Position numbers and translations under genes: made by a program
Shown: piece after piece, positions 36,101-64,000 of the stretch
How positions within the stretch are numbered: position 1 is the stretch's first letter
Layout: each line of letters opens with the position of its first letter
The notes under the pieces: generated by a model
Told to the model about the DNA's origin: nothing
What the model saw: the letters and a program-made list of their open reading frames with translations, nothing else
The model's database searches: none
DNA from: Macrostomum hystrix
Taxonomy: Eukaryota; Animalia; Platyhelminthes
Assembly: GCA_950097015.1 (NCBI GenBank)
Contig: CATNEN010000027.1
Span: 248,001-312,000 of the forward strand
Reading direction: 5' to 3'
Length of the DNA stretch: 64,000 nt

Positions 36101-38969
36101 TTATATCAAATCGTTCATGAGTCGGGAGTAGGAATCAATTGGTAATCTGGGATCTAAAGCTCGAAGCAACCTTGCGGAGGTGGGGTGGGCGGCCAGGATT
36201 TGCCATGCAACTGTGGACAAGACCCGCCCACGCTGAGTGGCGCCTCAAAGTCTGCGGCCTCTCCCAATGCGTCACTGATAAGATAATTAGATGTCTGAGG
36301 CGTCTCGAAGTACTTTTGGGCTGGCAACTGGACAATGGGCGAGTCTGGCAAACCGGTTATCTTGTGAGCGTTGCGATTGCACGGGAATCCCAAATCCATC
36401 TAAAATCCCAAATCCATCTAGAATCCCAAATCCATCTAGAATCCCAAATCTATCTAGAATCCCAAATCTATCTAGAATCCCAAATCTATCTAGAATCCCA
36501 AATCTATTTAAAATCCTAAAAGCCTTGAGAATCCCCAATGCCCTAAAAATGCCAGCAAATGCCAGTGAATCCTGCCAAGTCGCCAATCCATGCAGTTGGT
36601 AAACAGTTTTGCTAGCCTGTGCAGCTCAGAATATGCTCATGGATGTTGAGCGGTGCACAACTAGATGGAAACGGTTAGCCCCATGCCGGTTAGCAACTAA
36701 ATTTACAACTGCGGAGCGATCCACCAATTCTCACATCACTAATTCAACTGGGCAAAGTTTTGCAACGGCACCAGGCGTGACCTCACCAAACCGCATAGCA
36801 ACTGCTTTAGGAACTGAGGGGAACACGTATAGTAGTAGAAGCGAGACAGAGAGACTGCTCACCCAGCTGCAGCCACCTGTGTGAGCAGCGAATGCTTTAT
36901 CCCCGAGTTTTGCAACGGTACCAAAGAAGGACCCCACCAAATCGCCTAGCAACTGTGGGGGTAGAGATAGCACAGATCGACAGACTGCATTTCCAGCTGC
37001 AGCCACCTGTGTGAGTAGCGAATGCTCAAATCCCCGAGTTTTGCAACGGTACCAAAGCGGGACCCCACCAAATCGCCTAGCAACTGTGGGGGTAGAGATA
37101 GCACAGATCGACAGACTGCATTTCCAGCTGCAGCCACCTGTGTGGCAACCACTGGCCCAGAGACTCGGAGGGTTTGAGATGATCTCGCAGCGCTCTCTCC
37201 AGCTGCAGCCACCTGTGTGAGCAGCGAATGCTCAAATCCCCGAGCCGCTCAGCAACGGTTCGGCTGTTAGAACTTACGTCACACTCTACTCACTGTGCTC
37301 ACAGCTCAAGGGCCAGCGACCGCGGATTCCTCTGCTCACACAGCTGGAGCCAGCTGCAGCTTCTGGTGCTCTCTCCGACCCCAGTTTATCGCTGACCCAG
37401 TGCGTTTATCCCTGACCCAGTCTGTTTTTCCCTGACCCAGTGTGTAGGTTTATCCCTGACCCAGTCTGTTTATCCCTGTCCCAGTGTGTGTTTATCCCTG
37501 ACCCAGTGTCATGGGAAGGCTGACCCCACACACAGCTCGGCCTTGAGAACAGAGACTCAGCTCTGAGCACTGCCTACCTTCGCCACGCAGGTCAGTGAGT
37601 TGGCATTGTGTGAAACTCAGCAAACTGAAGCAATGCAAGGAAAGTTGGACATTGCTTTGCACAGTCAGTCAGAGGGCCGTTGGTGTGATCCGTGCAGCTT
37701 TTCTGCTTTTTACACCTGCCTTGCGCAACAGAGCTCAAACAGATTGATGGGATTCCAAAGTCCTCAATGTGCGAAACACATGCTTATTCTTTTATCCTCT
37801 CATTGGGATACTGTGAGAAATTTCCCGCTCAATGGATTAACGATATGACCAAATTATCTAATTGGCGCATTGTACGAGCATTGCAGATAGGCCTAAGCGA
37901 TATTGCTTGTCATTTAGTTCCTTACTCATAACATTTCTTTTGTCGGAAATCCCGTCTCCTCCCTAACAATTTCAACCCTAATTCCCATTCATTAATTTGC
38001 CTTTCAATTCTGTTTTGAGCACGAGTTATTTTCATGCTTTGTTGCTCACATAGATTAGTCAATAATTAGCCATAATGCAGCACATCACATCACAGATCAT
38101 TGGTTTGACTTCATAAACAATTTACTAAGACTGATTTTACACACTTAACAAGTGAGCATTGCATTACTAACTGACTACTCGAAGTAGAAAGTAAATGCTT
38201 CAGTTCAGAATCTGATGCCAATTAATGTAACTATTATTCACACATAAGTTTTTTTTAAATGTGCAATTTTTTATTTTTAATGTGCAAACAAAACGACACA
38301 GAAAATAGTTATGTACATGTCGAAAGGTAATCTAATGGCTGGTTAAAAGTGCAGGCTAGACTGAAAAAAAGAAAAATAAAATGCGTTATGTGCAAAACAA
38401 GGCGCAAAAGAGCAGCAAAATTATGAAAATGCACTTAATTATCTCTAGGGTCTAGAACCAGTAGCATAGGGGACTTCTAGAGTCTAGAACCAGTGGCATT
38501 AGGGACTTCTAGAGTCTAGAACCAGTGGCATTAGGGACTTCTAGAGTCTAGAACCAGTGGCATTAGGGACTTCATAGAGTCTAGAACCAGTGGCATTAGG
38601 GACTTCTAGAGTCTAGAACCAGTGGCATTAGGGACTTCATAGAGTCTAGAACCAGTGGCATTAGGGACTTCTAGAGTCTAGAACCAGTGGCATTAGGGAC
38701 TTCTAGAGTCTAGAACCAGTGGCATTAGGGACTTCTAAAGTCTAGAACCAGTAGCATAGGGGACTTCTAGAGTCTAGAACCAGTGGCATTAGGGACTTCT
38801 AGAGTCTGGAACCAGTGGCATTAGGGACGTCAAGAGTATAGAACCAGTGGCATTAGGGACTTCTAGAGTCTAGAACCAGTGTGGCATTGAGGGAATTCTA
38901 GAAAAAACATGATTAAAACACTCCCCGTTGGGGATTTACAGTCGCGGTACTCCAGTCTCCCAGCCGAGT

Positions 38970-41900
38970 CTAGTGGATGAAGTGGCAGCGGCTGCCGTAG
39001 CGGCAGACACCTTCGCCGTGGAAGGCGCGGCACTGCTCCGTTTTGAACAGGCGGTGCCGATCCGGCCTGTTGCGCAACTCCTGCCGACCGTGGGCGAACT
39101 GGCAGTGCTCGGCGTACTCGCAGCAGCCGCTGTCCTGTCGGTGTGGGGTTGTAGGGACTGTACAGTATCCTCTGTAGCTTATCCCCGCTGGTCAGCTTAG
39201 GCAGGGATAAACAGACTGGGTCAGGGATAAACCTACACACTGGGTCAGGGATAAACACACACTGGGTCAGGGATAAACAGACTGGGTCAGGGATAAACAC
39301 ACACTGGGACAGGGATAAACAGACTGGGTCAGGGATAAACGCACTGGGTCAGCGATAAACGCACTGGGTCAGGGATAAACACACACTGGGGACAGGGAAA
39401 AAGCACACACTGGGACAGGGAAAAACACACACTGGGTCAGGGATAAACACACTGGGTCAGGGATAAACACACACTGGGTCAGGGATAAACACACTGGGTC
39501 AGGGATAAACACACTGGGTCAGGGATAAACACACACTGGGACAGGGATAAACATTGTGCTTTATGCTTTTGTGCTCACCTGAAAGCTTCTGCACAGTTCA
39601 GTCTTGAATTTCAGGCCACCAGACGCAATTCGGACACGCTGTGCGGCCTTCAGGAGCCCTGACCTCGACGGCGAAGGCAAAGAAGTCGACAAAGCTGACG
39701 ACGAGCGCAGCTGAAGGAAGAGGAGTAGAGCCGTGATTACTCAAACTGAGTAGGGCAGACTAAAACCAAAGGGCAGACTAGAACCCAAGGGCAGACTAGA
39801 ACCCAAGGGCAGACTAGAACCCAAGGGCAGACTAAAACCCAAGGACAGACTAAAACCCAAGGGCAGACTAGAACCCAAGGGCAGACTAAAACCCAAGGGC
39901 AGACTAAAACCCAAGGGCAGACTAGAACCCAAGGGCAGACTAAAACCCAAGGGCAGACTAGAACCCAAGGGCAGACTAAAACCCAAGGGGCAGACTAAAA
40001 CCCAAGGGGCAGACTAAAACCCAAGGGCAGACTAAAACCCAAGGGCAGACTAAAACCCAAGGGGCAGACTAAAACCCAAGGGCAGACTAAAACCCAAGGG
40101 CAGACTAAAACCCAAGGGCAGACTAAAACCCAAGGGGCAGACTAAAACCCAAGGAGCAGACTAAAACCCAAGGGCAGACTAAAACCCAAGGGCAGACTAA
40201 AACCCAAGGGGCAGACTAAAACCCAAGGGGCAGACTAAAACCCAAGGGCAGACTAGAACCCAAGGGCAGACTAAAACCCAAGGGCAGACTAAAACCCAAG
40301 GGGCAGACTAAAACCCAAGGGCAGACTAAAACCCAAGGGCAGACTAAAACCCAAGGGCAGACTAAAACCCAAGGGGCAGACTAGAAGTCCAAAGGAAGGG
40401 CCCAATAGCAACTGTAGAAACCGAGGGAAAAGCACTTGAGTCTCAGATGGGGAGCACAACTCACCTTCGCTGAGTCCAGGCCGACAGCCGCGGCCGAAGC
40501 GGCGATACTTTGCTCAGCTTGATGACCTGCCTTGAATGAGCTGTCACTGCTGGCCAATGAGAACTGCTCAAAGCTCTGCAGGCGGTTGGAAAATTTGCTG
40601 ATAAACTGAGCAATAAACTGGAGTTGCTGATAAACTGTGAGCAATAAACTGGAGTTGCTGATAAACTGTGAGCAATAAACTGGAGTTGCTGATAAACTGT
40701 GAGCAATAAACTGGAGTTGCGGATAAACTGTGAGCAATAAACTGGAGTTGCGGATAAACTGTGAGCAATAAACTGGAGTTGCTGATAAACTGTGAGCAAT
40801 AAACTGGAGTTGCGGATAAACTGTGAGCAATAAACTGGAGTTGCTGATAAACTGAGCAATAAACTGGAGTTGCTGATAAACTGAGCAATAAACTGGAGTT
40901 GCTGATAAACTGAGCAATAAACTGGAGGTGCTGATAAACTGTGAGCAATAAACTGGAGTTGCTGATAAACTGGAGTTGCGGATAAACTGGAGTTGCGGAT
41001 AAACTGGAGTTGCTTATAAACTGTGTGGAATAAACTGGAGTTGCTGATAAACTGTGAGGAATAAACTGGAGTTGCGGATAAACTGGAGTTGCGGATAAAC
41101 TGGAGTTGCGGATAAACTGGAGTTGCTTATAAACTGTGTGGAATAAACTGGAGTTGCTGATAAACTGTGAGGAATAAACTGGAGTTGCGGATAAACTGGA
41201 GTTGCGGATAAACTGGAGTTGCGGATAAACTGGAGTTGCGGATAAACTGGAGTTGCTGATAAACTGTGAGCAATAAACTGGAGTTGCGGATAAACTGGAG
41301 TTGCGGATAAACTGGAGTTGCGGATAAACTGGAGTTGCGGATAAACTGGAGTTGCTGATAAACTGTGAGGAATAAACTGGAGTTGCTGATAAACTGTGAG
41401 GAATAAACTGGAGTTGCTGATAAACTGGAGTTGCTGATAAACTGTGAGGAATAAACTGGAGTTGCTGATAAACTGTGAGGAATAAACTGGAGTTGCTGAT
41501 AAACTGTGAGCAATAAACTGGAGTTGCTGATAAACTGTGTGGAATAAACTGGAGTTGCTGATAAACTGTGAGGAAAAAACTGGAGTTGCTGATAAACTGT
41601 GTGGAATAAACTGGAGTTGCTGATAAACTGTGAGCAATAAACTGGAGTTGCTGATAAACTGTGAGCAATAAACTGGAGTTGCTGATAAACTATGAGGAAT
41701 AAACTGGAGTTGCTGATACACTATGAGGAATAAACTGGAGTTGCTGATAAACTGGAGTTGCTGATACACGATGAGGAATAAACTGGAGTTGCTGATAAAC
41801 TGTGGGAAATAAACTGGAGTTGCTGATAAACTGTGTGGAATAAACTGGAGTTGCTGATAAACTGGAGTTGCTGATACACTATGAGGAATAAACTGGAGTT

Positions 41901-42545
41901 GCTGATAAACTGGAGTTGCTGATAAACTGGAGTTGCTGATAAACTGGAGTTGCTGATAAACTGGAGTTGCTGATAAACTGTGAGCAAAAACTGGAGTTTC
42001 TGATAAACTGTGAGGAATAAACTGGAGTTGCTGATAAACGGGAGTTGCTGATAAACTGGAGTTGCTGATAAACTGTGAGGAATAAACTGGAGTTGCTGAT
42101 AAACTATGAGGAATAAACTGGAGTTGCTGATAAACTATGAGGAATAAACTGGAGTTGCTGATACAGGGAAAACTCACCTGAAGCTCAATGTCGATAGACC
42201 TCAGGCACTGCAGAGCGGTCACGAAGGCCAGTTCAGGCTCAGCTGGAAGTGCTTTGACCGTTGCTGTGTGGAGCTCAGTGCTCAACAATTGCCAGTCGAG
42301 GCCGCTGCTGGACAGTGGCGATAGCGAACTCGCTGAGACATCACCGGGCGACTGCAGAATGGCGAGAAGCAGGTGAAGTGTAAGTATAAGCGAGGAGAGA
42401 CTGATTGAAACAGAAGAAAAACATTTGTGATCAGAAATCAGGAAATAGTGGAGGCCAAAAATGGCAAAAATGAGCAACCGTTATCACTTACCGATGGAGT
42501 GAAGCCAGAATCGGATGCTGAGCTACCAAATGCAAATTGGAGCAT
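38970..42545 (-). CDS. zfp36-like: TIS11/ZFP36-family tandem CCCH zinc-finger protein, copy 2 (211 aa)
   Basis: Exons 42545-42492, 42351-42178, 40575-40465, 39710-39579, 39134-38970; same structure as copy 1, ORF intact, M>I change in exon 4. Confidence 0.92.
40598..42165. repeat. 17/31-bp array GCTGATAAAC(TGTGAGCAATAAAC)TGGAGTT in ZFP36-like intron 2; also at 32340-32945 and inverted at 60312-61060
   Basis: Direct reading. Confidence 0.95.
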
Positions 42546-44764
42546 TTCTGCAGGGATCGATAAATAGCAGTTAGCAGTAGGCTAGGATAAGCGAGTGTTG
42601 AATCAAATTGAGCCTGGAACCTTGAACTGTTTCAAGAGTCAAGACATCTCGGGCGCCTATTTAATGACTTGGATTTGGGCTGGGGTGGCCTTCCTCCGTT
42701 AGCCAGTGCAGGGGAAGCGACTCGTCTGATTCGAAGATCGCGCACCCAGAGGGGTGTCAGGGAGGGGGTGGGTGGCTTCCATTTCACACCCTCCTACGCG
42801 GCCGCGGAACCGCTGGCTGAACGCAGGGGCGAAATTTAAACAGAATTTAATTTAATAGCACAAACTGAGCCAGCCGTATAATGCCAATAATATGAATCCT
42901 TATCTCTGAATTTCGCTTATTCTTTAAGATGCAAAGAACTGCCACTGAGCCACAAGTTAAGGCGTTGAGACTGCAAGGCACAATATCATCAACTGTGTAA
43001 GACTGTGAAACCGAGAAGCTCAAGTTAAACAACTCTATGCTTTGAACAAAGACTGCATCCCTCAAGCTTAGGATTAGGAAAATGAAGCAGTGCCAATGCC
43101 TATCTGTATATGCATGGGCCAGAATGAAACAGGCCCTCTATAGTTGCTGAATTGCTTCAACTAGACATCGAAACACAGTCTAAAGTGAGTAGCGATACGA
43201 AAACTGCTCATTCAACTGTACAATTTGCCACCGGTTAGAAACAGAATCTGGATGACGGAAGAAGAGAATAGCAGAATTTCGAAGTGGAGGAGGGGTGGGC
43301 GTTCTGAGGCGTCTCAGAAATGTTTTGTACAGTTTCACTGCGGTTGTTAACAATGCAAATGCAAATGACATTCTGATCTGACATTCTGACATATTATATC
43401 TAATGTGGATCGATAAAAGCCGGCTAAAGCTGGTGCATATGAGTTCGTTTAACTGCTAAACACAGATAGTTGCATGTATTTTTTGCTATTGGCAAGTGCA
43501 AATTATGTGCTTTAATAATTTTACGAACAATTTAATCATAATAGTGTCTTCAGTAAAGAACTGATCGCATAGCAACTGCTTTAGGAACTGAGGGGAACAC
43601 GTCTAGAAGTAGAAGCCAGACAGAGAGACAGCTCACCCAGCAGCAGCTTCCTGTGTGAGCAGCGAATGCTCGAATCCCAGAGTTTTGCAACGAAATGGCA
43701 TTCCCATAGCCCACCATACATTCACATCTTTCCATCCATTCACTTCCCATCCCGTTACCATCCAGCATTGTCAAAATTTAGCTTTATTTCTAAACCCTCC
43801 CTATCCGTTCCCCAATCCTTCGCATCTTATTCCCTAACATCCGTTACAATCCATTCACTTCCCTTCCGATCCTTTTCCATCCCTTCCCATCCCTTCCCAT
43901 CCCTTCCCATCCCTTCTCATCGCTTCCCATCCCTTCCCATCGCTTCCCATCCCTTCCCATCCCTTCCCATCCCCTTCACATCCCTTCCCATCGCTTCCCA
44001 TCCCTTCCCATCCCTTCCCATCCCTTCCCATCCCTTCCCATCCCTTCCCATCCCTTCCCATCCCCTTCACATCCCTTCCCATCCCTTCCCATCCCTTCCC
44101 ATCCCTTCCCATCCCCTTCTCATCCCTTCCCATCGCTTCCCATCCCTCCCCATCGCTTTCCATCCCTTCCCATCCCTTCCCATCCCTTCCCATCCCTTCC
44201 CATCCCTTCCCATCCCTTCCCATCCCTCCCCATCCAGTTGAGCTGAATGTCAAGGCAAAGAGTTTCAGTTTGCAATGGGATCGTTATTAAAAAATAAAAT
44301 ATTCTTGACTTCCCCAAATTCCCTCGCATTGCCCAGCTCAGAATTACTCTGTGGCCTCCTAAAGCCTCCCACAATAAAGTTACTTTGGGAAGAGGCCGCA
44401 GACTTCCGCAGACACGCAGGGTGTCGTGTCTTGCCAGCGCTGAGTAACTGCCCACCCCACCTCCGGCCGACCACCCAGGAGAATCTTCAGCGCGAACTCC
44501 TCCTCGCTTGTCGGCAATAAATCAAAGAGTGTCGGAGTCTTGACAGTCACTGAGGCAGAAGCCACTGATTGTTTCTTCTGTCACATGCAAAAGTTCAGGA
44601 CTGCAAGACTTGCCGCAATGCACCGCACACACAGGACAAAGACTCACAACAGGGAAGACAAGTGACTGTCCCCGTGATATCAATCCTATGGACTTCGGCA
44701 GAAAAGTGAAAAACTAAAGTAGGATTTTTTAATTCGGTTTAGGACAGTTTGTTTGAGGATGTTT

Positions 44765-47130
44765 GAGGATAATATCTAGTGAAATGTAGGATGAGAATAG
44801 CTGATTTCTGTGGGATAATATCTAGTGAGATGTAGGATGAGAATAGCTTATTTCTGTGGGATAATATCCAGTGAGATGTAGGATGAGAATAGCTGATTTC
44901 TGTGGGATAATATCCAGTGAGATGTAGGATGAGAATAGCTGATTTCTTTGGGATAATATCCTGTGAAATGTAGGATGAGAATAGCTTATTTCTTTGGGAT
45001 AATATCTAGTGAAATGTAGGATGAGAATAGCTTATTTCTGTGGGATAATATCCAGTGAGATGTAGGATGAGAATAGCTTATTTCTGTGGGATAATATCCA
45101 GTGAGATGTAGGATGAGAATAGCTGATTTCTGTGGGATAATATCCAGTGAGATGTAGGATGAGAATAGCTGATTTCTGTGGGATAATATCCAGTGAGATG
45201 TAGGATGAGAATAGCTGATTTCTGTGGGATAATATCCAGTGAGATGTGGGATGAGAATAGCTGATTTCTGTGGGATAATATCCAGTGAGATGTAGGATGA
45301 GAATAGCTGATTTCTGTGGGATAATATCCTGTGAGATGTAGGATGTGAATAGCTGATTTCTGTGGGATAATATCCAGTGAGATGAGGGATGAGAATAGCT
45401 GATTTCTGTGGGATAATATCCAGTGAGATGTAGGATGAGAATAGCTGATTTCTGTGGGATAATATCCAGTGAGATGTAGGATGAGAATAGCTGATTTCTG
45501 TGGGATAATATCCAGTGAGATGTGGGATAAGAATAGCTGATTTCTGTGGGATAATATCCAGTGAGATGTGGGATGAGAATAGCTTATTTCTGTGGGATAA
45601 TATCCAGTGAGATGTGGGATGAGAATAGCTGATTTCTGTGGGATAATATCCAGTGAGATGTGGGATGAGAATAGCTGATTTCTGTGGGATAATATCCAGT
45701 GAGATGTAGGATGAGAATAGCTGATTTCTGTGGGATAATATCCAGTGAGATGTGGGATGAGAATAGCTGATTTCTGTGGGATAATATCCAGTGAGATGTG
45801 GGATGAGAATAGCTTATTTCTGTGGGATAATATCCAGTGAGATGTGGGATGAGAATAGCTGATTTCTGTGGGATAATATCCAGTGAGATGTGGGATGAGA
45901 ATAGCTGATTTCTGTGGGATAATGTCCAGTGAGATGTAGGATGAGAATAGCTGATTTCTGTGGGATAATATCCAGTGAGATGTGGGATGAGAATAGCTGA
46001 TTTCTGTGGGATAATATCCAGTGAGATGTAGGATGAGAATAGCTGATTTCTGTGGGATAATATCCTGTGAGATGTAGGATGTGAATAGCTGATTTCTGTG
46101 GGATAATATCCAGTGAGATGAGGGATGAGAATAGCTGATTTCTGTGGGATAATATCCAGTGAGATGTAGGATGAGAATAGCTTATTTCTGTGGGATAATA
46201 TCCAGTGAGATGTAGGATGAGAATAGCTGATTTCTGTGGGATAATATCCAGTGAGATGTGGGATGAGAATAGCTGATTTCTGTGGGATAATATCCAGTGA
46301 GATGTGGGATGAGAATAGCTTATTTCTGTGGGATAATATCCAGTGAGATGTGGGATGAGAATAGCTGATTTCTGTGGGATAATATCCAGTGAGATGTGGG
46401 ATGAGAATAGCTGATTTCTGTGGGATAATATCCAGTGAGATGTGGGATGAGAATAGCTTATTTCTGTGGGATAATATCCAGTGAGATGTGGGATGAGAAT
46501 AGCTGATTTCTGTGGGATAATATCCAGTGAGATGTGGGATGAGAATAGCTGATTTCTGTGGGATAATATCCAGTGAGATGTAGGATGAGAATAGCTGATT
46601 TCTGTGGGATAATATCCAGTGAGATGTGGGATGAGAATAGCTGATTTCTGTGGGATAATATCCAGTGAGATGTAGGATGAGAATAGCTGATTTCTGTGGG
46701 ATAATATCCTGTGAGATGTAGGATGTGAATAGCTGATTTCTGTGGGATAATATCCAGTGAGATGAGGGATGAGAATAGCTGATTTCTGTGGGATAATATC
46801 CAGTGAGATGTAGGATGAGAATAGCTGATTTCTGTGGGATAATATCCAGTGAGATGTAGGATGAGAATAGCTGATTTCTGTGGGATAATATCCAGTGAGA
46901 TGTGGGATGAGAATAGCTGATTTCTGTGGGATAATATCCAGTGAGATGTGGGATGAGAATAGCTTATTTCTGTGGGATAATATCCAGTGAGATGTGGGAT
47001 GAGAATAGCTGATTTCTGTGGGATAATATCCAGTGAGATGTGGGATGAGAATGGCTTATTTCTGTGGGATAATATCCTGTGAGATGTAGGATGAGAATAG
47101 CTTATTTCTGTGGGATAATATCCTGTGAGA
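44765..47130. repeat. 46-bp satellite, unit-3 copy (~51 units)
   Basis: Same monomer. Confidence 0.95.
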
Positions 47131-52475: not shown

Positions 52476-52864
52476 CTGGCCGGCCGCGAGCTGTCACAGC
52501 ACCATCAGCATCGACCCAGTCAGCACCATCAGAACATGGCCCAGTCGGCACCTTTCTCGCCTTAACACCAAAACACAGTGTAACACTAAAAGTGTTTTTT
52601 GGTTTTTGCATTGTTAAATGTTATATATTTTCAAAGTGCGAAAATGTTCCCATTTCCATCATTTCAAATGGATTGTCCCATTTCATAAATAGTTACGATT
52701 TCCACGTATCAGGAAAGCGAAATCCGCTCTACAAAGCTAATTTTTATTTCTAAAGAAATCGAATGATTTCTTTATTACAATATGCACTTTTGTAAAAAAA
52801 ATTTTTAATTTTAGCATAATTCCGCAAACTGTGTCAATTTCCACAATTCCTATCAATAGACGCG

Positions 52865-52870
52865 AATAAA
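52865..52870 (+). other. Candidate nanos polyadenylation signal AATAAA
   Basis: About 390 bp after the stop, at the end of an AT-rich 3' region. Confidence 0.4.
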
Positions 52871-52999
52871 TTCTTGCAGCTTGAGTCCTTGACAGACAAA
52901 TGTGCCGGAGACCATTGCCGTGCTGTTGCGTGCACAATGATACAATGATTTTGCTTTCACTCTCATCGTCTGTTCAGCAAACAGGCCCTACACATGTGA

Positions 53000-53330
53000 A
53001 GATGAGACAGCGGAAGACATAAGATAAAGAAGAGATGAGACAGGGGCGAAATGAGGTAGTGGAGAGATGAGGCATTGGAGAGATGAGGCAGGGAATAGAT
53101 GTGACAGAAAAAAAGAGTAAGGGGAGAGATGAGACAGGGGAGATGAGGCAGTGGAGAGGTGAGACAGGGGAGAGATGAGACAGGGAATAGATGTGACAGA
53201 AGAAATGAGTAAGGGGAGAGATGAGACAGGGGAGATGAGGAAGGGGAGAGATGAGACAGGGAAGAGATGAGACAGGGGAGAGATGAGACAGGGGAGAGAT
53301 GAGACAGGGGAGAGATGAGACAGAGGAGAG
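53000..53330. repeat. GAGATGAGACAGGG satellite, reverse complement of the 12500-14710 family
   Basis: Direct reading. Confidence 0.85.
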
Positions 53331-55911
53331 TTGGTTTTATAAGGGGCCAGACTAATGAGCTACGACAGCCACATCTAGCCTGTTGACCTGGGGATGGGGA
53401 CCCCGAGAATTCCGCAATAGAACATTGGATACAACAATTTAATAAAGGATTCCGCAATAGGATTCGAATTTACACAATGGCAAAATGCATGGCGTATTTT
53501 CGATGTCAAATGAAATTGAATTCTGAAATTGCTGCAATTGTCGGTTCTCAGTTGTCAGTTGATTCCTGAATAATATTTTAAGTTCTGAGTGTGACGTAAG
53601 TTTATCAGAACGGGATATTTGTCCCAGCATGGCCACGGCACTGAGGATGACTGTAGGCACGTGTACGGTTCGCACATTGAGGACTTTGGAATCCCATCAA
53701 TCTGTTTGAGCTCTGTTGCGCAATGCAGGTGTAAAAAGCAGAAAAGCTGCACGGATCACACCAACGGCCCTCTGACTGACTGTGCAAAGCAATGTCCATC
53801 TTTCCTTGCATTGGCTTCAGTTTGCTGAGTTTCACACAATGCCAACTCACTGACCTGCGTGGCGAAGGTAGGCAGTGCTCAGAGCTGAGTCTCTGTTCTC
53901 AAGGCCGAGCTGTGTGTGGGGTCCGCCTCCCCATGGCAACCGAGATGCACTGGGGTCGGAGAGAGCACCAGAAGCTGCAGCTGGCTCCAGCTGTGTGAGC
54001 AGAGGAATCCGCGGTCTCTGGCCCTTGAGCTGTGAGCACAGTGAGTAGAGTGTGACGTAAGTTCTAACAGCCGAACCGTTGCCGAGCGGCTCGGGGATTT
54101 GAGCATTCGCTGCTCACACAGGTGGCTGCAGCTGGAGAGAGCGCTGCGAGATCATCTCAAACCCTCCGAGTCTCTGGGCCAGTGGTTGCCACACAGGTGG
54201 CTGCAGCTGGAAATGCAGTCTCTCGATCTGTGCTATCTCTACCCCCACAGTTGCTAGGCGATTTGGTGGGGTCCCGCTTTGGTACCGTTGCAAAACTCGG
54301 GGATTTGAGCATTCGCTGCTCACACAGGTGGCTGCAGCTGGGTGAGCAGTCTCTCTGTCTCGCTTCTACTACTATACGTGTTCCCCTCAGTTCCTAAAGC
54401 AGTTGCTATGCGGTTTGGTGGGGTCCCGCCTGGTGCCGTTGCAAAACTTTGCCCAGTTGAATTAGTGATGTGAGAATTGGTGGATCGCTCCGCAGTTGTA
54501 AATTTAGTTGCTAACCGGCATTGGGCTAACCGTTTCCATCTAGTTGTGCACCGCTCAACATCCATGAGCATATTCTGAGCCGCACAGGCTAGCAAAACTG
54601 TTTACCAACTGCATGGATTGGCGACTTGGCAGGATTCACTGGCATTTGCTGGCATTTTTAGGGCATTGGGGATTCTCAAGGCTTTTAGGATTTTAAATAG
54701 ATTTGGGATTCTTGATGGATTTGGGATTCTAGATAGATTTGGGATTCTAGATAGATTTGGGATTCTAGATTGATTTGGGATTTCGCATTCTAAAATGATT
54801 TAGCATTTTAAATAGGTTAAGAATTCTAAATTGATTTAGGATTATAATTAAATTTGGAATTCTAAATGGATTTTGGATTCGAAATGGATTTAGGATTCTA
54901 AAAGGATTTGGGATTCTAAACTGATTTAGGCTTCTAGTTGATTTAGGTTTCTAAATGGATTTGGGATTCTACTTCGTAGTTGGATTAGGGATTTGGAATT
55001 TGGGATTCAAAATGGATTTGGGATTCTAGTTGGATTAGGGAATGTAGATAGATTTGGGATTCTAGATATATTTGGGATTCTAGATAGATTTGGGATTCTA
55101 GATAGATTTGGGATTCTAGATAGATTTGGGATTCTAGATAGATTTGGGATTCTAGATAGATTTGGGATTCTAGATAGATTTGGGATTCTAGATAGATTTG
55201 GGATTCTAGATAGATTTGGGATTCTAGATAGATTTGGGATTCTAGATAGATTTGGGATTCTAGATAGATTTGGGATTCTACATAGATTTGGGATTCTAGA
55301 TGGATTTGGGATTCTAGATGGATTTGGGATTCTAGATGGATTTGGGATTCCTGTGCAATCGCAACGCTCACAAGAAAACCGGTTTGCCAGACTCGCCCAT
55401 TGTCCAGTTGCCAGCCCAAAAGTACTTCGAGACGCCTCAGACATCTAATTATCTTATCAGTGACGCATTGGGAGAGGCCGCAGACTTTGAGGCGCCACTC
55501 AGCGTGGGCGGGTCTTGTCCACAGTTGCATGGCAAATCCTGGCCGCCCACCCCACCTCCGCAAGGTTGCTTCGAGCTTTAGATCCCAGATTACCAATTGA
55601 TTCCTACTCCCGACTCATGAACGATTTGATGGCATTGTTGACAAATGACTAAAAAAGCACTGCTTGAGAACAGTCTTTGTTGACTTACACTTGTTAGAGG
55701 CGTCTTTATTGGAGACTCAAATTTGGTGTTTGCATACACACACTGAGTTCTCTTGTTCTGTGAAGCCAAATTATGAATGGGATAATTAAGAATGGATCGG
55801 CATTCGGCATATTAAGAATGCAGGAAGGAATATTAATATTAAGGAATGAATATTTTCCAGATGGGATTAATCCCATGTCAGGATTCTTTGGGATTATCCT
55901 ATTATTGAGCT

Positions 55912-57670
55912 GCCATCTCACAGGATATTATCCCACAGAAATCAGCTATTCTCATCCTACATCTCACTGGATATTATCCCACAGAAATCAGCTATTCTAA
56001 TCCCACATCTCACTGGATATTATCCCACAGAAATCAGCTATTCTCATCCTACATCTCACAGGATATTATCCCACAGAAATCAGCTATTCTAATCCCACAT
56101 CTCACTAGATATTATCCCACAGAAATCAGCTATTCTCATCCCACATCTCACTGGATATTATCCCACAAAAATCAGCTATTCTCATCCTACATTTCACTGG
56201 ATATTATCCCACAGAAATCAGCTATTCTCATCCTACATCTCACTGGATATTATCCCACAGAAATCAGCTATTCTCATCCTACATCTCACTGGATATTATC
56301 CCACAGAAATAAGCTATTCTCATCCTACATCTCACTAGATATTATCCCACAGAAATCAGCTATTCTCAATCCACATCTCACTGGATATTATCCCACAGAA
56401 ATAAGCTATTCTCATCCTACATCTCACTGGATATTATCCCACAGAAATCAGCTATTCTCATCCCACATCTCACTGGATATTATCCCACAGAAATCAGCTA
56501 TTCTCATCCTACATCTCACTGGATATTATCCCACAGAAATCAGCTATTCTCATCCTACATCTCACTGGATATTATCCCACAGAAATAAGCTATTCTCATC
56601 CCACATCTCACTGGATATTATCCCACAGAAATCAGCTATTCTCATCCTACATCTCACTGGATATTATCCCACAGAAATCAGCTATTCTCATCCTACATCT
56701 CACTGGATATTATCCCACAGAAATAAGCTATTCTCATCCTACATCTCACTGGATATTATCCCACAGAAATCAGCTATTCTCATCCCACATCTCACTGGAT
56801 ATTATCCCACAGAAATCAGCTATTCTCATCCTACATCTCACTGGATATTATCCCACAGAAATAAGCTATTCTCATCCTACATCTCACTGGATATTATCCC
56901 ACAGAAATCAGCTATTCTCATCCCACATCTCACTGGATATTATCCCACAGAAATCAGCTATTCTCATCCTACATCTCACTGGATATTATCCCACAGAAAT
57001 CAGCTATTCTCATCCTACATCTCACTGGATATTATCCCACAGAAATAAGCTATTCTCATCCCACATCTCACTGGATATTATCCCACAGAAATCAGCTATT
57101 CTCATCCTACATCTCACTGGATATTATCCCACAGAAATCAGCTATTCTCATCCCTCATCTCACTGGATATTATCCCACAGAAATCAGCTATTCTCATCCT
57201 ACATCTCACTGGATATTATCCCACAGAAATCAGCTATTCTCATCCTACATCTCACTGGATATTATCCCACAGAAATAAGCTATTCTCATCCTACATCTCA
57301 CTGGATATTATCCCACAGAAATAAGCTATTTTTATCCTACATCTCACTGGATATTATCCCACAGAAATAAGCTATTCTCATCCTACATTTCACTAGACAT
57401 TATCCCACAGAAATAAGCTATTCTCATCCTACATCTCACTGGATATTATCCCACAGAAATCAGCTATTCTCATCCTACATCTCACTGGATATTATCCCAC
57501 AGAAATAAGCTATTCTCATCCTACATTTCACTAGACATTATCCCACAGAAATAAGCTATTCTCATCCTACATCTCACTGGATATTATCCCACAGAAATCA
57601 GCTATTCTCATCCTACATCTCACTAGACATTATCCCACAGAAATCAGCTATTCTCATCCTACATTTCACT
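55912..57670. repeat. 46-bp satellite, inverted copy (~38 units)
   Basis: Reverse complement of the same monomer. Confidence 0.95.
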
Positions 57671-59639
57671 AGATATTATCCTCAAACATCCTCAAACAAA
57701 CTGTCCTAAACCGAATTAAAAAATCCTACTTTAGTTTTTCACTTTTCTGCCAACGAAGTCCATAGGATTGATATCACGGGGACAGTCACTTGTCTTCCCT
57801 GTTGTGAGTCTTTGTCCTGTGTGTGCGGTGCATTGCGGCAAGTCTTGCAGTCCTGAACTTTTGCATGTGACAGAAGAAACAATCAGTGGCTTCTGCCTCA
57901 GTGACTGTCAAGACTCCGACACTCTTTGATTTATTGCCGACAAGCGAGGAGGAGTTCGCGCTGAAGATTCTCCTGGGTGGTCGGCCGGAGGTGGGGTGGG
58001 CAGTTACTCAGCGCTGGCAAGACACGACACCCTGCGTGTCTGCGGAAGTCTGCGGCCTCTTCCCAAAGTAACTTTATTGTGGGAGGCTTTAGGAGGCCAC
58101 AGAGTAATTCTGAGCTGGGCAATGCGAGGGAATTTGGGGAAGTCAAGAATATTTTATTTTTTAATAACGATCCCATTGCAAACTGAAACACTTTGCCTTG
58201 ACATTCAGCTCAACTGGATGGGGAGGGATGGGAAGGGATGGGAAGGGATGGGAAGGGATGGGAAGGGATGGGAAGGGATGGGAAGGGATGGAAAGCGATG
58301 GGGAGGGATGGGAAGCGATGGGAAGGGATGAGAAGGGGATGGGAAGGGATGGGAAGGGATGGGAAGGGATGGGAAGGGATGTGAAGGGGATGGGAAGGGA
58401 TGGGAAGGGATGGGAAGGGATGGGAAGGGATGGGAAGGGATGGGAAGGGATGGGAAGCGATGGGAAGGGATGTGAAGGGGATGGGAAGGGATGGGAAGGG
58501 ATGGGAAGCGATGGGAAGGGATGGGAAGCGATGAGAAGGGATGGGAAGGGATGGGAAGGGATGGGAAGGGATGGGAAGCGATGGGAAGGGATGGAAAAGG
58601 ATCGGAAGGGAAGTGAATGGATTGTAACGGATGTTAGGGAATAAGATGCGAAGGATTGGGGAACGGATAGGGAGGGTTTAGAAATAAAGCTAAATTTTGA
58701 CAATGCTGGATGGTAACGGGATGGGAAGTGAATGGATGGAAAGATGTGAATGTATGGTGGGCTATGGGAATGCCATTTCGTTGCAAAACTCTGGGATTCG
58801 AGCATTCGCTGCTCACACAGGAAGCTGCTGCTGGGTGAGCTGTCTCTCTGTCTGGCTTCTACTTCTAGACGTGTTCCCCTCAGTTCCTAAAGCAGTTGCT
58901 ATGCGATCAGTTCTTTACTGAAGACACTATTATGATTAAATTGTTCGTAAAATTATTAAAGCACATAATTTGCACTTGCCAATAGCAAAAAATACATGCA
59001 ACTATCTGTGTTAAACAGTTAAACAGTTAAACGAACTCATATGCACCAGCTTTAGCCGGCTTTTATCGATCCACATTAGATATAATATGTCAGAATGTCA
59101 GATCAGAATGTCATTTGCATTTGCATTGTTAACAACCGCAGTGAAACTGTACAAAACATTTCTGAGACGCCTCAGAACGCCCACCCCTCCTCCACTTCGA
59201 AATTCTGCTATTCTCTTCTTCCGTCATCCAGATTCTGTTTCTAACCGGTGGCAAATTGTACAGTTGAATGAGCAGTTTTCGTATCGCTACTCACTTTAGA
59301 CTGTGTTTCGATGTCTAGTTGAAGCAATTCAGCAACTATAGAGGGCCTGTTTCATTCTGGCCCATGCATATACAGATAGGCATTGGCACTGCTTCATTTT
59401 CCTAATCCTAAGCTTGAGGGATGCAGTCTTTGTTCAAAGCATAGAGTTGTTTAACTTGAGCTTCTCGGTTTCACAGTCTTACACAGTTGATGATATTGTG
59501 CCTTGCAGTCTCAACGCCTTAACTTGTGGCTCAGTGGCAGTTCTTTGCATCTTAAAGAATAAGCGAAATTCAGAGATAAGGATTCATATTATAGGCATTA
59601 TACGGCTGGCTCAGTTTGTGCTATTAAATTAAATTCTGT

Positions 59640-59830
59640 TTAAATTTCGCCCCTGCGTTCAGCCAGCGGTTCCGCGGCCGCGTAGGAGGGTGTGAAATGG
59701 AAGCCACCCACCCCCTCCCTGACACCCCTCTGGGTGCGCGATCTTCGAATCAGACGAGTCGCTTCCCCTGCACTGGCTAACGGAGGAAGGCCACCCCAGC
59801 CCAAATCCAAGTCATTAAATAGGCGCCCGA
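59640..59830 (+). promoter_or_regulatory. Putative ZFP36-like promoter (GC-rich island with CACCC boxes and TATA-like ATTAAATA); same sequence at ~33430-33620 and ~42650-42840 on -
   Basis: CpG-rich patch 100-300 bp upstream of the ATG inside AT-rich flanks, near-identical in all three copies; function inferred. Confidence 0.45.
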
Positions 59831-59933
59831 GATGTCTTGACTCTTGAAACAGTTCAAGGTTCCAGGCTCAATTTGATTCAACACTCGCTTATCCTAGCCT
59901 ACTGCTAACTGCTATTTATCGATCCCTGCAGAA

Positions 59934-62854
59934 ATGCTCCAATTTGCATTTGGTAGCTCAGCATCCGATTCTGGCTTCACTCCATCGGTAAGTGATAACG
60001 GTTGCTCATTTTTGCCATTTTTGGCCTCCACTATTTCCTGATTTCTGATCACAAATGTTTTTCTTCTGTTTCAATCAGTCTCTCCTCGCTTATACTTACA
60101 CTTCACCTGCTTCTCGCCATTCTGCAGTCGCCCGGTGATGTCTCAGCGAGTTCGCTATCGCCACTGTCCAGCAGCGGCCTCGACTGGCAATTGTTGAGCA
60201 CTGAGCTCCACACAGCAACGGTCAAAGCACTTCCAGCTGAGCCTGAACTGGCCTTCGTGACCGCTCTGCAGTGCCTGAGGTCTATCGACATTGAGCTTCA
60301 GGTGAGTTTTCCCTGTATCAGCAACTCCAGTTTATTCCTCATAGTGTATCAGCAACTCCAGTTTATTCCTCATAGTTTATCAGCAACTCCAGTTTATTCC
60401 TCACAGTTTATCAGCAACTCCAGTTTTTGCTCACAGTTTATCAGCAACTCCAGTTTATCAGCAACTCCAGTTTATCAGCAACTCCAGTTTATCAGCAACT
60501 CCAGTTTATCAGCAACTCCAGTTTATCAGCAACTCCAGTTTATTCCTCATAGTGTATCAGCAACTCCAGTTTATCAGCAACTCCAGTTTATTCCACACAG
60601 TTTATCAGCAACTCCAGTTTATTTCCCACAGTTTATCAGCAACTCCAGTTTATTCCTCATCGTGTATCAGCAACTCCAGTTTATCAGCAACTCCAGTTTA
60701 TTCCTCATAGTGTATCAGCAACTCCAGTTTATTGCTCACAGTTTATCAGCAACTCCAGTTTATTGCTCACAGTTTATCAGCAACTCCAGTTTATTGCTCA
60801 CAGTTTATCAGCAACTCCAGTTTATTGCTCACAGTTTATCAGTAACTTCAGGTTATTCCTCACAGTTTATCAGCAACTCCAGTTTATTGCTCACAGTTTA
60901 TCAGCAACTCCAGTTTATTGCTCACAGTTTATCAGCAACTCCAGTTTATTGCTCACAGTTTATCAGCAACTCCAGTTTATTGCTCACAGTTTATCAGCAA
61001 CTCCAGTTTATTGCTCACAGTTTATCAGCAACTCCAGTTTATTGCTCAGTTTATCAGCAAATTTTCCATCCGCCTGCAGAGCTTTGAGCAGTTCTCATTG
61101 GCCAGCAGTGACAGCTCATTCAAGGCAGGTCATCAAGCTGAGCAAAGTATCGCCGCTTCGGCCACGGCTGTCGGCCTGGACTCAGCGAAGGTGAGTTGTG
61201 CTCCCAATCTGAGACTCAAGTGCTTTTCCCTCGGTTTCTACAGTTGCTATTGGGCCCTTCCTTTGGACTTCTAGTCTGTCCCTTGGGTTTTACTCTGCCC
61301 TTGGGTTCTAGTCTGCCCTTGGGTTTTAGTCTGCCCTTGGGTTTTAGTCTGCCCTTGGGTTTTAGTCTGCCCTTGGGTTTTAGTCTGCCCCTTGGGTTTT
61401 AGTCTGCCCTTGGGTTTTAGTCTGTCCCTTGGGTTTTAGTCTGCCCCTTGGTTTTAGTCAGTCCCTTGGGTTTTAGTCTGCCCTTGGGTTTTAGTCTGCC
61501 CTTGGGTTTTAGTCTGCCCCTGGGTTTTAGTCTGCCCTTGGGTTCTAGTCTGCCCTTGGGTTTTAGTCTGCCCTTGGGTTTTAGTCTGCCCTTGGGTTCT
61601 AGTCTGCCCTTGGGTTTTAGTCTGCCCCTGGGTTTTAGTCTGCCCTTGGGTTCTAGTCTGCCCTTGGGTTTTAGTCTGCCCTTGGGTTCTAGTCTGCCCT
61701 TGGGTTTTAGTCTGCCCTTGGTTTTAGTCTGCCCCTTGGGTTTTAGTCTGCCCCTTGGGTTTTAGTCTGCCCCTTGGTTTTAGTCTGCCCCTTGGGTTTT
61801 AGTCTGCCCTTGAGTATTACTCTGCCCTTGGGTTCTAGTCTGCTCAGTTTGAGTAATCATGGCTCTACTCCTCTTCCTTCAGTTGCGCTCGTCGTCAGCT
61901 TTGTCGACTTCTTTGCCTTCGCCGTCGAGGTCAGGGCTTCTGAAGGCCGCCCAGCGTGTCCGAATGGCGTCTGGTGGCCTGAAATTCAAGACTGAACTGT
62001 GCAGAAGCTTTCAGGTGAGCACAAAAGCACTGTTTATCCCTGACCCAGTGTGTGTTTATCCCTGACCCAGTGTGTGTTTGTCCCTGACCCAGTGTGTGTT
62101 TATCCCTGACCCAGTGTGTGTTTATCCCTGACCCAGTGTGTGTTTATCCCTGACCCAGTGTGTGTTTATCCCTGACCCAGTGTGTGTTTATCCCTGACCC
62201 AGTGTGTGTTTATCCCTGACCCAGTGTGTGTTTATCCCTGACCCAGTGTGTGTTTATCCCTGACCCAGTGTGTGTTTATCCCTGTCCCAGTGTGTGTTTA
62301 TCCCTGTCCCAGTGTGTGTTTATCCCTGACCCAGTGTGTGTTTATCCCTGACCCAGTGTGTGTTTATCTCTGACCCAGTGTGTGTTTGTCCCTGTCCCAG
62401 TGTGTGTTTATCCCTGACCCAGTCTGTTTATCCCTGACCCAGTCTGTTTATCCCTGACCCAGTGTGTGGTTTTATCCCTGACCCAGTCTGCTTATCACTG
62501 AACCAGTCTGTTTATCCCTGACCTAGTCTGTTTATCCCTGACCCAGTCTGTTTATCCCTGACCCAGTCTGTTTATCCCTGACCCAGTCTGTTTATCCCTG
62601 ACCTAGTGTGTGTTTATTCCTGCCTAAGCTGACCAGCGAGTATAAGCTACAAAGGATACTGTACAGTCCCTACAACCCCACACCGACAGGACAGCGGCTG
62701 CTGCGAGTACGCCGAGCACTGCCAGTTCGCCCACGGTCGGCAGGAGTTGCGCAACAGGCCGGATCGGCACCGCCTGTTCAAAACGGAGCAGTGCCGCGCC
62801 TTCCACGGCGAAGGTGTCTGCCGCTACGGCAGCCGCTGCCACTTCATTCACTAG
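59934..62854 (+). CDS. zfp36-like: TIS11/ZFP36-family tandem CCCH zinc-finger protein, copy 3 (inverted; 211 aa)
   Basis: Exons 59934-59987 ([18 protein letters not shown]), 60128-60301, 61080-61190, 61883-62014 (..[13 protein letters not shown]), 62690-62854 ([41 protein letters not shown]). Confidence 0.92.
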
Positions 62855-64000
62855 ACTCGGCTGGGAGACTGGAGTACCGCGACTGTAAATCCCCAACGGG
62901 GAGTGTTTTAATCATGTTTTTTTCTAGAATTCCCTCAATGCCACACTGGTTCTAGACTCTAGAAGTCCCTAATGCCACTGGTTCTATACTCTTGACGTCC
63001 CTAATGCCACTGGTTCTAGACTCTAGAAGTCCCTAATGCCACTGGTTCTAGACTCTAGAAGTCCTTAATGCCACTGGTTCTAGACTCTAGAAGTCCCCTA
63101 TGCTACTGGTTCTAGACTCTAGAAGTCCCCTATGCTACTGGTTCTAGACTCTATAAGTCCCTAATGCCACTGGTTCTAGACTCTAGAAGTCCCTAATGCC
63201 ACTGGTTCTAGACTCTAGAAGTCCCCTATGCTACTGGTTCTAGACTCTAGAAGTCCCCTATGCTACTGGTTCTAGACTCTAGAAGTCCCCTATGCTACTG
63301 GTTCTAGACTCTAGAAGTCCCTAATGCCACTGGTTCTAGACTCTAGAAGTCCCTAATGCCACTGGTTCTAGACTCTAGAAGTCCCCTATGCTACTGGTTC
63401 TAGACTCTAGAAGTCCCTAATGCCACTGGTTCTAGACTCTAGAAGTCCCCTATGCTACTGGTTCTAGACTCTAGAAGTCCCTAATGCCACTGGTTCTAGA
63501 CTCTAGAAGTCCCCTATGCTACTGGTTCTAGACTCTAGAAGTCCCCAATGCTACTGGTTCTAGACTCTAGAAGTCCCCTATGCTACTGGTTCTAGACTCT
63601 AGAGATAATTAAGTGCATTTTCATAATTTTGCTGCTCTTTTACGCCTTGTTTTGCACGTAACGCATTTTATTTTTCTATTTTTCAGTCTAGCCTGCACTT
63701 TTAACCAGCCATTTGATTACCTTTCGACGTGTACATAACTATTTTCTGTGTCGTTTTGTTTGCACATTAAAAATAAAAAAAGTAAAAATTAAAGAACTAA
63801 TTTTAATGTTCTCGAATTTTAGGACAAACTTTTACCGTTAAAAAGTTATGCCAATTTTATTTGTTTAGGTTTTAACTTGCGAAATAGTTCGTATTTATTC
63901 CACATTTATAAATAAATATTAAAGGCCATCTAACCGATCTCCAAGCTTTAAAGCAATGGACCTGTTTGTTCTTCTATAAATTGCTAATAAGGATTTTGTA

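Follow-up and report, generated by a model that had tools for sequence, protein, structure and literature searches.

Ampliconic palindromes of sex chromosomes have an arm-to-arm identity above 99.9%, which is kept by gene conversion. In flatworms, nanos is the classic determinant of early germ cells, and in planarians the TIS11-family gene zfs1 has, reportedly, been shown recently to determine the identity of female germ cells. Planarian early germ cells are marked by nanos, and zfs1 is specific to female germ cells and required there (PMC8994625). A conserved C-terminal CNOT1-binding motif is a feature of the TIS11/TTP (ZFP36) family (PMC8180021). Here we analyse a 64-kb stretch of Macrostomum hystrix DNA (the window), in which nanos lies between inverted copies of a unit that carries a TIS11-like tandem zinc-finger gene.

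Results

BLAST of the tandem-repeat-masked window against itself yielded a collinear chain of inverted matches running from 38288<->63759 inward to 49515<->53600. The two arms (38288-49515 and 53600 to 64000 and beyond, at least 10.2-11.2 kb) are opposed across a spacer of 4,084 bp (Table 1). A previous sequence-only reading had described a giant palindrome around a spacer of 4,086 bp (49515-53600). Opposed arms and a spacer are indeed present, but the spacer bounds shift to 49516-53599 and the geometry is more complex. Two further copies of the unit, the full copy B and the partial copy A', are in direct orientation, so that the structure consists of a tandem array to which one inverted unit is added. 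C is the innermost direct unit and D lies inverted downstream, so that the two form 11-kb inverted arms around nanos. The ends of the arms are sharp, and the innermost 56 bp are common to C and D and not found in A' and B.

Units are approximately 10.6-11.2 kb long, and more than half of each consists of minisatellites, in the form of several different arrays, one per intron or spacer; within the window, TRF masked 35,276 of 64,000 bases as tandem arrays. The unique segments of C and D are 96.8-99.4% identical in the masked self-BLAST and 97.5-99.8% in the comparison of the unique sequence, and with the arrays included, unmasked self-BLAST gave 96.5% identity for a block of 5.1 kb and 93.7% for one of 3.0 kb. 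As noted previously, the arms differ both in single nucleotides and in array lengths: the 46-mer array has 51 copies in C and 38 in D (73.5 in A'), the 32-mer array 14 and 21, respectively. Approximately 1 kb upstream of nanos, the spacer contains a stretch that matches the end of the unique segment u4, the 10-mer array and u5 of the unit, and which represents an older duplication layer. In every unit, the counterpart of this nanos-upstream sequence lies on the 5' side of the TIS11-like gene.

Table 1. Coordinates of repeat units and predicted exons (positions in the window).
Feature	Position	Strand	Basis or remark
Unit A', partial direct copy	20930..27367	+	Starts at 10-mer array; without TIS11-like exons; masked self-BLAST
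Unit B, full direct copy	27368..38248	+	Third TIS11-like gene copy, on minus strand
Unit C, left arm of inverted repeat	38288..49515	+	Self-BLAST
Single-copy spacer with nanos	49516..53599		Masked self-BLAST and X1 depth
Unit D, right arm, inverted copy	53600..64000	-	Continues past window end
Older paralog of unit segment 43693-44635	49612..50356	+	79-86% identical
Predicted nanos exon 1, Q-rich N-terminal part	51329..51713	+	ORF; donor CAAG/GTGTTT, phase 1
14-mer minisatellite in predicted nanos intron	51793..52015	+	Array detection and sequence
Predicted nanos exon 2, both CCHC fingers and stop	52096..52475	+	Pfam; acceptor tttttactcag/
TIS11-like E1, unit C	40465..40575	-	5' limit 40575 or 40597
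TIS11-like E2, unit C	39579..39710	-	Ends with first half of finger 1 (11 residues)
TIS11-like E3, unit C	38970..39134	-	Remainder of finger 1, linker, finger 2, stop
TIS11-like E1, unit B	32208..32318	-	Sequence comparison of units
TIS11-like E2, unit B	30582..30713	-	Sequence comparison of units
TIS11-like E3 and stop, unit B	29801..29965	-	Sequence comparison of units
TIS11-like E1, unit D	61080..61190	+	Sequence comparison of units
TIS11-like E2, unit D	61883..62014	+	Sequence comparison of units
TIS11-like E3 and stop, unit D	62690..62854	+	Sequence comparison of units

The earlier statement that nanos is the only recognisable gene of the spacer was confirmed. The ORF at 52116-52475 (plus strand) matched Pfam zf-nanos (PF05741; 3e-24, 85.5 bits) over 54 of 54 profile positions, with both CCHC zinc fingers in canonical spacing, and the C-terminal 97 residues are 70% identical to M. 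lignano A0A1I8F3U0. A word-index homology search with this ORF returned, owing to its length filter, no more than one fly and one fish hit. In the predicted gene, a donor at 51713/51714 fits the acceptor at 52095/52096, and exon 2 has an alternative acceptor at 52128/52129. Another exon 1 donor, GTGAGT at 51775, is strong but was rejected, since no in-frame acceptor fits its phase. Predicted exon 1 had no Pfam match and no significant similarity to M. lignano N-terminal sequence, and an N-terminal NOT1-interacting motif was not recognisable in it. By tblastn, neither a second nanos nor a nanos pseudogene was found in the arms or the rest of the window. Apart from the nanos ORF, no stop-free stretch of spacer and arms matched any Pfam family; ten further open stretches gave sub-threshold noise only, and the idea of another gene inside the 1.7-kb unique segment was rejected. 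Rfam detected no RNA family in 20000-64000.

The sequence-only reading had also placed an intact, outward-directed TIS11/ZFP36-like gene in each arm. Intactness and orientation hold (minus strand in C, plus strand in D), but the copies number three instead of two, because B, C and D each contain all three exons intact, two of these copies being in tandem. Predicted splice sites and reading frames are preserved in the three units, the zinc-finger domain is split across two exons, and each intron contains a private array. No in-frame ATG was found in E1 or in the open frame upstream of it.

The predicted protein consists of approximately 80 residues followed by two tandem C-x8-C-x5-C-x3-H fingers of 20 residues each. 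Its best PDB match was TIS11d (1rgo, E 3.9e-21), and TTP matched with E 1.6e-17 (1m9o). The finger lead-ins KFKTELC and LFKTEQC come close to the (R/K)YKTELC of the family, though they deviate from the strict signature, and the fingers are spaced by 19 residues rather than 18, visible as a one-residue gap in the HMMER alignments with TIS11d and TTP. In 3/3 copies, the stop codon follows directly after the last histidine, which is the last zinc ligand (FIH-stop). As the protein ends right after finger 2, it has no C-terminal NOT1-binding region, and the suggestion that it recruits CCR4-NOT is unsupported. The three exons had no match in NCBIfam, a prokaryote-centred library, the ESM Atlas returned generic CCCH clusters only, and a word-index homology search with a 73-aa stretch gave no candidate. 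Among RNA runs, none was listed as containing E3. Over 405 nt of coding sequence, the copies differ by four synonymous and two non-synonymous substitutions (ratio approximately 0.15, p = 0.03, a test based on these six substitutions), and B, C and D do not differ in the zinc-finger part. Copy-specific changes include A29T in D and I65M in C.

Linkage in a second species was read from gene models. Four M. lignano gene models hold nanos together with the TIS11-like E3 exon in sense or antisense, all of them fused, frame-wandering models from an old draft assembly. P0015 contains E3 in sense (75% identity over 40 aa, E 4e-14) and P0035 a sense fragment approximately 20-30 residues past the nanos C-terminus. 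In P0004 and P0020, E3 is antisense (E approximately 1e-10); P0020 contains in addition another nanos, which is antisense (E 2e-29 to 2e-33), so that the TIS11-like sequence is situated between inverted nanos copies. Since these models contain both genes, the linkage of nanos with a TIS11-like gene appears to be common to two Macrostomum species, and its presence in a second species of the genus is, on the gene models, new here. The geometry of P0020 differs from that in M. hystrix, which indicates that the palindrome itself is not conserved.

Comparison of the copies site by site gave a mosaic picture. C and D agree at 16 of 21 variable sites in u4-u6, the inner unique segments, compared with 4/21 in the outer gene-bearing segments u0-u3 (Fisher p = 5e-4); the excess is confined to the inner 2.5 kb. 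Mismatches between C and D amount to 3/1674 in the inner 1.7 kb and 1/531 in u5. Within the innermost 433 bp, C and D have 11 differences, making this the most diverged arm segment, versus two between A' and C, and in the outer gene-bearing part C is not the nearest relative of D. These mosaic relationships point to sequence exchange between the copies. As regards C and its inverted counterpart D in particular, some evidence of such exchange is given by the trace in u4-u6. Part of the mosaicism at SNP level could be a polishing artefact of multi-copy sequence in a PacBio/Illumina assembly.

Sequence depth was taken from one independent DNA run, X1, in the form of k=31 contigs reaching 30 nt into each arm. 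One contig crosses each inner junction (49486-49762, depth 73; 53304-53629, depth 65). Word depth was approximately 82 in the spacer (across 50964-52933), 79-92 in C-specific sequence (48600-48993) and approximately 73 in the D-specific inner arm. Arm sequence common to the units (contig 48995-49450) reached 344, or 4.2x. The C-type inner segment (4.2x) and the D-type (approximately 0.9x) add up to about five as against four assembled copies. Word depth translates only loosely into copy number; the assembly may have collapsed one unit, or the segment may have further copies elsewhere in the genome.

Discussion

Most of these data are accounted for by a segmental amplification that is real and young and that arose where nanos already had a small TIS11/ZFP36-family gene as its neighbour, and we consider this explanation probable. 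The linkage would be ancestral in the genus. Two full units and a partial one would have come to lie head-to-tail upstream of nanos and one inverted downstream of it. A single inverted duplication would have produced the C/D pair, since both share one truncation point and the 56 bp that are absent elsewhere. Later, the copies would have swapped sequence by conversion or unequal crossing-over, resulting in the mosaic, while the coding sequence stayed intact and nearly identical. The gene product would be a minimal RNA binder of the AU-rich-element type, with two canonical CCCH fingers and nothing after them, and extra copies would mainly raise its dosage. The palindromic layout most likely came about as a side effect of duplication in a region rich in arrays and prone to recombination, and not as a selected device. 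A possible reason for the linkage of the two genes is that they are regulated jointly in germ cells.

An assembly artefact, i.e. a fold-back chimeric long read, or haplotypes or collapsed paralogs joined in opposite orientation, has to be considered because the genus was assembled from PacBio reads with canu and separately assembled haplotypes needed purging (PMC10468722), and because more than half of the region consists of tandem arrays that are difficult to assemble. However, a unique, gene-bearing spacer of 4 kb is not expected in a fold-back read, and SNPs and array lengths differ between the arms. Both junctions were recovered in the X1 k-mer assembly at single-copy depth, close to that of the spacer, with C-specific and D-specific segments each at about 1x and common arm sequence at about 4x, whereas haplotypes would add up to 1x. 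These observations argue against an artefact, which we regard as very improbable, and for a real inverted structure. A different question is whether selection maintains this structure, in the style of sex chromosomes, with arm-to-arm conversion keeping a palindrome that preserves and co-expresses two germline mRNA repressors. Hardly any differences separate C from D in the inner 1.7 kb and u5, where the two are closer to each other than either is to B, the TIS11-like coding sequence is conserved among copies, and linkage is kept in M. lignano, inverted arrangements included; moreover, planarian female germ cells need zfs1, and early germ cells are marked by nanos (PMC8994625). Yet homogenisation does not extend over the whole arms: the gene-bearing outer part of D is not nearest to C, and the innermost segment, with its 11/433 differences, is the most diverged. 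With two further direct units present, much of the similarity can be put down to tandem exchange. In addition, the protein is without a C-terminal NOT1-binding region and the palindrome is not conserved in M. lignano. Macrostomum species are simultaneous hermaphrodites without sex chromosomes (PMC10468722), so hemizygosity would not be the driver at the M. hystrix locus, and with an identity below 99.9% the analogy to sex-chromosome palindromes drawn by the sequence-only reading is unsupported. A selected amplicon of this kind therefore seems unlikely to us.

The two genes might also form an operon-like pair that shares a transcription or regulatory module, in which spliced-leader trans-splicing matures the TIS11-like mRNA and supplies its AUG. 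This would fit the lack of an in-frame ATG in E1 and upstream. An acceptor ctgcag/AGC (40576/40575 in C) would bring a leader-borne AUG into frame, and known flatworm spliced leaders all end in AUG, which sometimes serves as start codon (PMC10468722, supplement). The gene of unit D lies downstream of nanos on the same strand, the M. lignano models P0035 and P0020 have a TIS11-like exon a few tens of residues past the nanos C-terminus, on the same strand, and the nanos-upstream sequence has its paralog 5' of the gene in each unit. On the other hand, 8.6 kb of array-rich DNA separate the nanos stop from E1 of unit D, far above typical operon spacing, the genes of B and C are directed away from nanos, fused models of a draft assembly are weak evidence of transcripts, and an ATG-bearing upstream exon might be located inside the 1.7-kb unique segment; we hold such a pair to be doubtful. 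Equally speculative is a broader scheme of an ancestrally linked, co-regulated module of nanos and a truncated TIS11-type gene in germ cells, possibly co-transcribed and resolved through spliced-leader trans-splicing, whose copy number and orientation would be remodelled by tandem and inverted duplication with conversion, as an autosomal, hermaphrodite counterpart of the germline amplicons of sex chromosomes. Segmental amplification next to an older gene pair remains our preferred explanation.

A TIS11-type gene that seems physically linked with nanos in two species of Macrostomum, and has multiplied around it in one of them, offers a concrete and cheap hypothesis in a genus that is transgenic and amenable to RNAi. 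It raises the questions of whether the genes are co-expressed, how important copy number is, and whether the truncated protein acts as a repressor or as a competitor of its full-length relatives. Should the genes prove not to be co-expressed, the locus would be no more than a segmental duplication, if a well-documented one, in a genome rich in arrays. The locus also suggests that sex chromosomes are not the only place where large inverted repeats arise that bear genes and are homogenised in patches.

With TIS11/TTP (ZFP36), planarian zfs1 and the germline tandem-zinc-finger proteins of C. elegans, the predicted TIS11-like protein shares the two C-x8-C-x5-C-x3-H fingers and KTEL-type lead-ins, and it differs from the TIS11/TTP family in its longer linker, the exact lead-in residues, the short stretch before the fingers and the absence of a NOT1-binding domain behind them. 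The fingers of the predicted nanos product agree with those of the Nanos family in type and spacing, whereas the Q-rich N-terminal exon and the intron filled by a 14-mer array set the gene apart. As in arrays of the TSPY or DUX4/D4Z4 type, head-to-tail units of about 10 kb carry one small gene each, array lengths vary between units and copies evolve in concert; A' (in part), B and C are direct, with the gene intact in B and C, and sequence common to the units has about 4x the depth of the spacer. In contrast to those arrays, there are approximately 2.6 direct units plus one inverted across a single-copy gene, and more than half of the unit is made up of several different minisatellites. Mammalian sex-chromosome palindromes (human Y P1-P8 and X-linked ones) resemble the locus in their long inverted arms, unique spacer and multi-copy arm gene, and for both there is some evidence of exchange between inverted copies. 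In M. hystrix, however, identity is lower and array lengths are widely unequal, the left arm belongs to a direct tandem array, and the conserved germline gene, nanos, is single-copy in the spacer and not in the arms.

Results

Masking with TRF assigned 35,276 of the window's 64,000 bases to tandem arrays, and minisatellites of dozens of different kinds occur across it. Because a direct search for inverted repeats was dominated by a 46-bp array, self-BLAST was run on both the unmasked and the TRF-masked window. After masking, inverted matches were collinear from 38288<->63759 inward to 49515<->53600, and the unique segments of the two arms, units C and D, were 96.8-99.4% identical. The unit is also present in direct orientation (B and the partial A'), so that the locus reads A'-B-C, nanos and then inverted D. 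At their inner ends all four units match up to about 49457. A further 56 bp, ending abruptly, is common to C and D alone; both therefore go back to one inverted duplication that took in the flank of the unit. The arrays are of strongly unequal length among the units, and the array-length difference between the arms had been correctly read from the sequence (see table).

Features of the locus (X1, DNA sequencing run independent of the assembly; word depth, k-mer depth)
Feature	Position	Strand or orientation	Details
Unit A'	20930-27367	direct	partial, starts at 10-mer array; self-BLAST; 46-mer 73.5 copies, 32-mer not present
Unit B	about 27368-38248	direct	self-BLAST; 46-mer 12.3 copies, 32-mer 56
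Unit C		direct	46-mer 51.4 copies, 32-mer 14
Unit D		inverted	46-mer 38.4 copies, 32-mer 21
Spacer	49516-53599		4,084 bp; self-BLAST
TIS11-like E1, unit C	40465-40575	-	
TIS11-like E2, unit C	39579-39710	-	
TIS11-like E3, unit C	38970-39134	-	DSGCC...RCHFIH, then stop codon
nanos ORF	52116-52475	+	full-profile Pfam zf-nanos match, 3e-24
Predicted nanos exon 1, Q-rich	51329-51713	+	phase-1 donor, read from sequence
Predicted nanos exon 2	52096-52475	+	acceptor tttttactcag, read from sequence
CCAGCTGCAGCCACCTGTGTGAGCAGCGAATGC element	36863-37144, 48565-49023, 43566-43692, 54286-54412		
C-specific sequence	48600-48993		X1 word depth 79-92
Shared arm contig	48995-49450		X1 word depth 344 (4.2x)
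Left junction contig	49486-49762		X1 word depth 73
Single-copy spacer (nanos)	50964-52933		X1 word depth 82-165, mostly 82-100
Right junction contig	53304-53629		X1 word depth 65
D-specific inner arm	53525-54115		X1 word depth about 73; one bin without contig

The boundary of the unit differs between copies, as about 370 bp found at the A'/B junction (27368-27777) is missing at the B/C junction (38249-38289) and partly recurs, at 90% identity, at the outer end of D (63760-64000), which resembles the A'/B junction. Short tandems of an element of ~130-207 bp starting CCAGCTGCAGCCACCTGTGTGAGCAGCGAATGC lie near the inner end of every unit, and a 127-bp piece of it, 93% identical, sits within the 1.7-kb unique segment. 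It matched no Rfam family and could represent a small mobile element, or else serve as a substrate for recombination. Directly left of the first unit is a GC-rich island (18531-19439, 57% GC) in which long open frames of the two strands overlap; the minus-strand frame of 303 aa weakly resembles Hsp20/alpha-crystallin (3e-6, 27.7 bits), and none of its stretches reached the cutoff by itself.

Of the 21 variable sites in the inner unique sequence, made up of the 1.7-kb u4 together with u5 and u6, 16 are alike in C and D and different in B; the same holds for only 4 of 21 in the outer segments u0-u3, which bear the gene (Fisher p = 5e-4). A' and C showed 2 differences in the 433 bp nearest the inner end, where D differed from either at 10-11 positions. 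These patterns mark the units as mosaics, indicating that they have swapped sequence, the inverted pair included, and that the arms have not been homogenised end to end. Some of this mosaic pattern could stem from faulty polishing of multi-copy sequence.

X1, in the form of k=31 contigs (197 Mb in total, near the published genome size, about 220-227 Mb), was placed on positions 48600-54500. Both inner junctions exist in it at full single-copy depth. The arm portion of each junction contig is exactly 30 nt (k-1) long, the length to be expected at a branch of the k-mer graph. The sequence-only reading had proposed a depth of 1x for the spacer and 3-4x for the arms; the values obtained, ~82 and 344 (4.2x), come near this and favour the structure, word depth being a rough measure of copy number only. 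Stitched haplotypes would have given the arms the depth of the spacer, and a fold-back read would contain no 4-kb genic spacer. The large inverted repeat claimed around nanos, with its arms and spacer, is thus real by depth, but it is not a plain palindrome, as the direct units A' and B also belong to the locus. C-type and D-type depths add up to ~5 copies, compared with 4 in the assembly. The left-junction contig departs from the window at 49561, 49629 and 49682, three positions in 122 bp; either the X1 individuals were not exactly those assembled, or this stretch was mis-polished.

A motif scan of the window found exactly three CCCH second fingers, on the minus strand in B and C and on the plus strand in D. 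The exons of the TIS11-like gene, E1-E3, were located by reading the unique islands between arrays. They have canonical splice sites and, when joined, encode a complete tandem zinc finger, whose top solved-structure matches were TIS11d (1rgo, 3.9e-21) and TTP (1m9o, 1.6e-17). All three copies are intact: each arm carries the gene, as had been proposed, and a third lies in B. Over 405 nt the copies show 4 synonymous and 2 non-synonymous changes (ratio about 0.15, p = 0.03), and their zinc fingers are identical. No in-frame ATG was found in E1 or in the open frame upstream of it within the 31-mer array. Translation may begin in an upstream exon that escaped detection, or at an AUG brought by a spliced leader. 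All known flatworm spliced leaders end in AUG, which sometimes serves as start codon (PMC10468722 supplement), and the E1 acceptor (ctgcag/AGC) would place a leader AUG in frame.

That nanos is the only recognisable gene of the spacer was borne out, since no other open stretch of spacer or arms matched a Pfam family; tblastn found no second nanos within the window. It is predicted to have two exons, the putative intron containing a private 14-mer array. Outside the zinc fingers its nearest relative is M. lignano A0A1I8F3U0 (69-70% identity). Many of the best protein-library matches to nanos (P0005-P0012) carry 2-4 nanos zinc-finger domains per predicted protein; in several organisms nanos seems frequently to be duplicated in tandem, or to be represented by models that fuse such duplicates. 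A GAGACAGG-type 14/16-mer array on the spacer's right-hand edge (53000-53330) is 75-82% similar to a large array at 12498-14708; its summed X1 word depth of about 2.2 million in one bin marks it as a genome-wide abundant satellite.

Four nanos-type protein models were found in M. lignano: P0004 (= A0A1I8F3U0), P0015, P0020 and P0035. Because these are fused, frame-wandering predictions, they reveal sequence adjoining nanos. P0015 runs from nanos through a sense TIS11-like E3 (75% identity across 40 aa, with E-values of 4e-14 in tblastn and 1e-17 in BLASTP) to nanos again, and in P0035 an E3 fragment, AHGPEELRGRPDRH, follows ~20-30 residues past the nanos C-terminus. Antisense E3 follows nanos in P0004 and P0020. 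P0020 (525 aa; residues 204-258 and 362-443) has an antisense E3 between a sense nanos finger and a second, antisense nanos (E 2e-33), pointing to a tail-to-tail inverted nanos duplication. These models argue that the two genes are tightly linked in M. lignano in both relative orientations. An older relationship is suggested by the spacer segment 49612-50356, ~1 kb upstream of nanos, a 79-86% paralog of unit segment 43693-44635, whose type sits 5' of each TIS11-like gene: either the two genes formerly had a common intergenic region, or the unit captured sequence from upstream of nanos.

Discussion

The locus belongs with segmental duplications or ampliconic inverted repeats. The sequence-only description of it is borne out with amendments, and the interpretation given there in part. 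Our data demonstrate a real tandem-plus-inverted amplification with intact, near-identical gene copies that have exchanged sequence, and a gene linkage found in two species. The proposed analogy with sex-chromosome palindromes fails, because arm identity is too low and the animals are hermaphrodites.

The TIS11-like protein departs from the TTP/TIS11 family signature in having a linker of 19 rather than 18 residues and Phe instead of Tyr in both lead-ins. As it also terminates at the last zinc ligand, it is without the C-terminal NOT1-binding domain by which the decay activity of the TTP family is defined (PMC8180021); the earlier argument from CCR4-NOT recruitment is lost with this tail. Added copies would mean a higher dose of a minimal RNA binder of the AU-rich-element type.

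The most useful outcome is the conserved linkage of nanos and TIS11-like genes, for which the cross-species evidence is new and which lends itself to direct tests, the genus being a tractable model. It is common to both Macrostomum species compared, whereas the particular palindrome is not: M. lignano has at least one inverted arrangement with nanos in the arms and the TIS11-like gene in the middle, the reverse of that described here. The linkage may reflect regulation shared with nanos in germ cells. A germline role of the pair is plausible by analogy with planarians, since zfs1, of the TIS11 family, is specific to and required in female germ cells, and nanos is a marker of early germ cells in males and females alike (PMC8994625).
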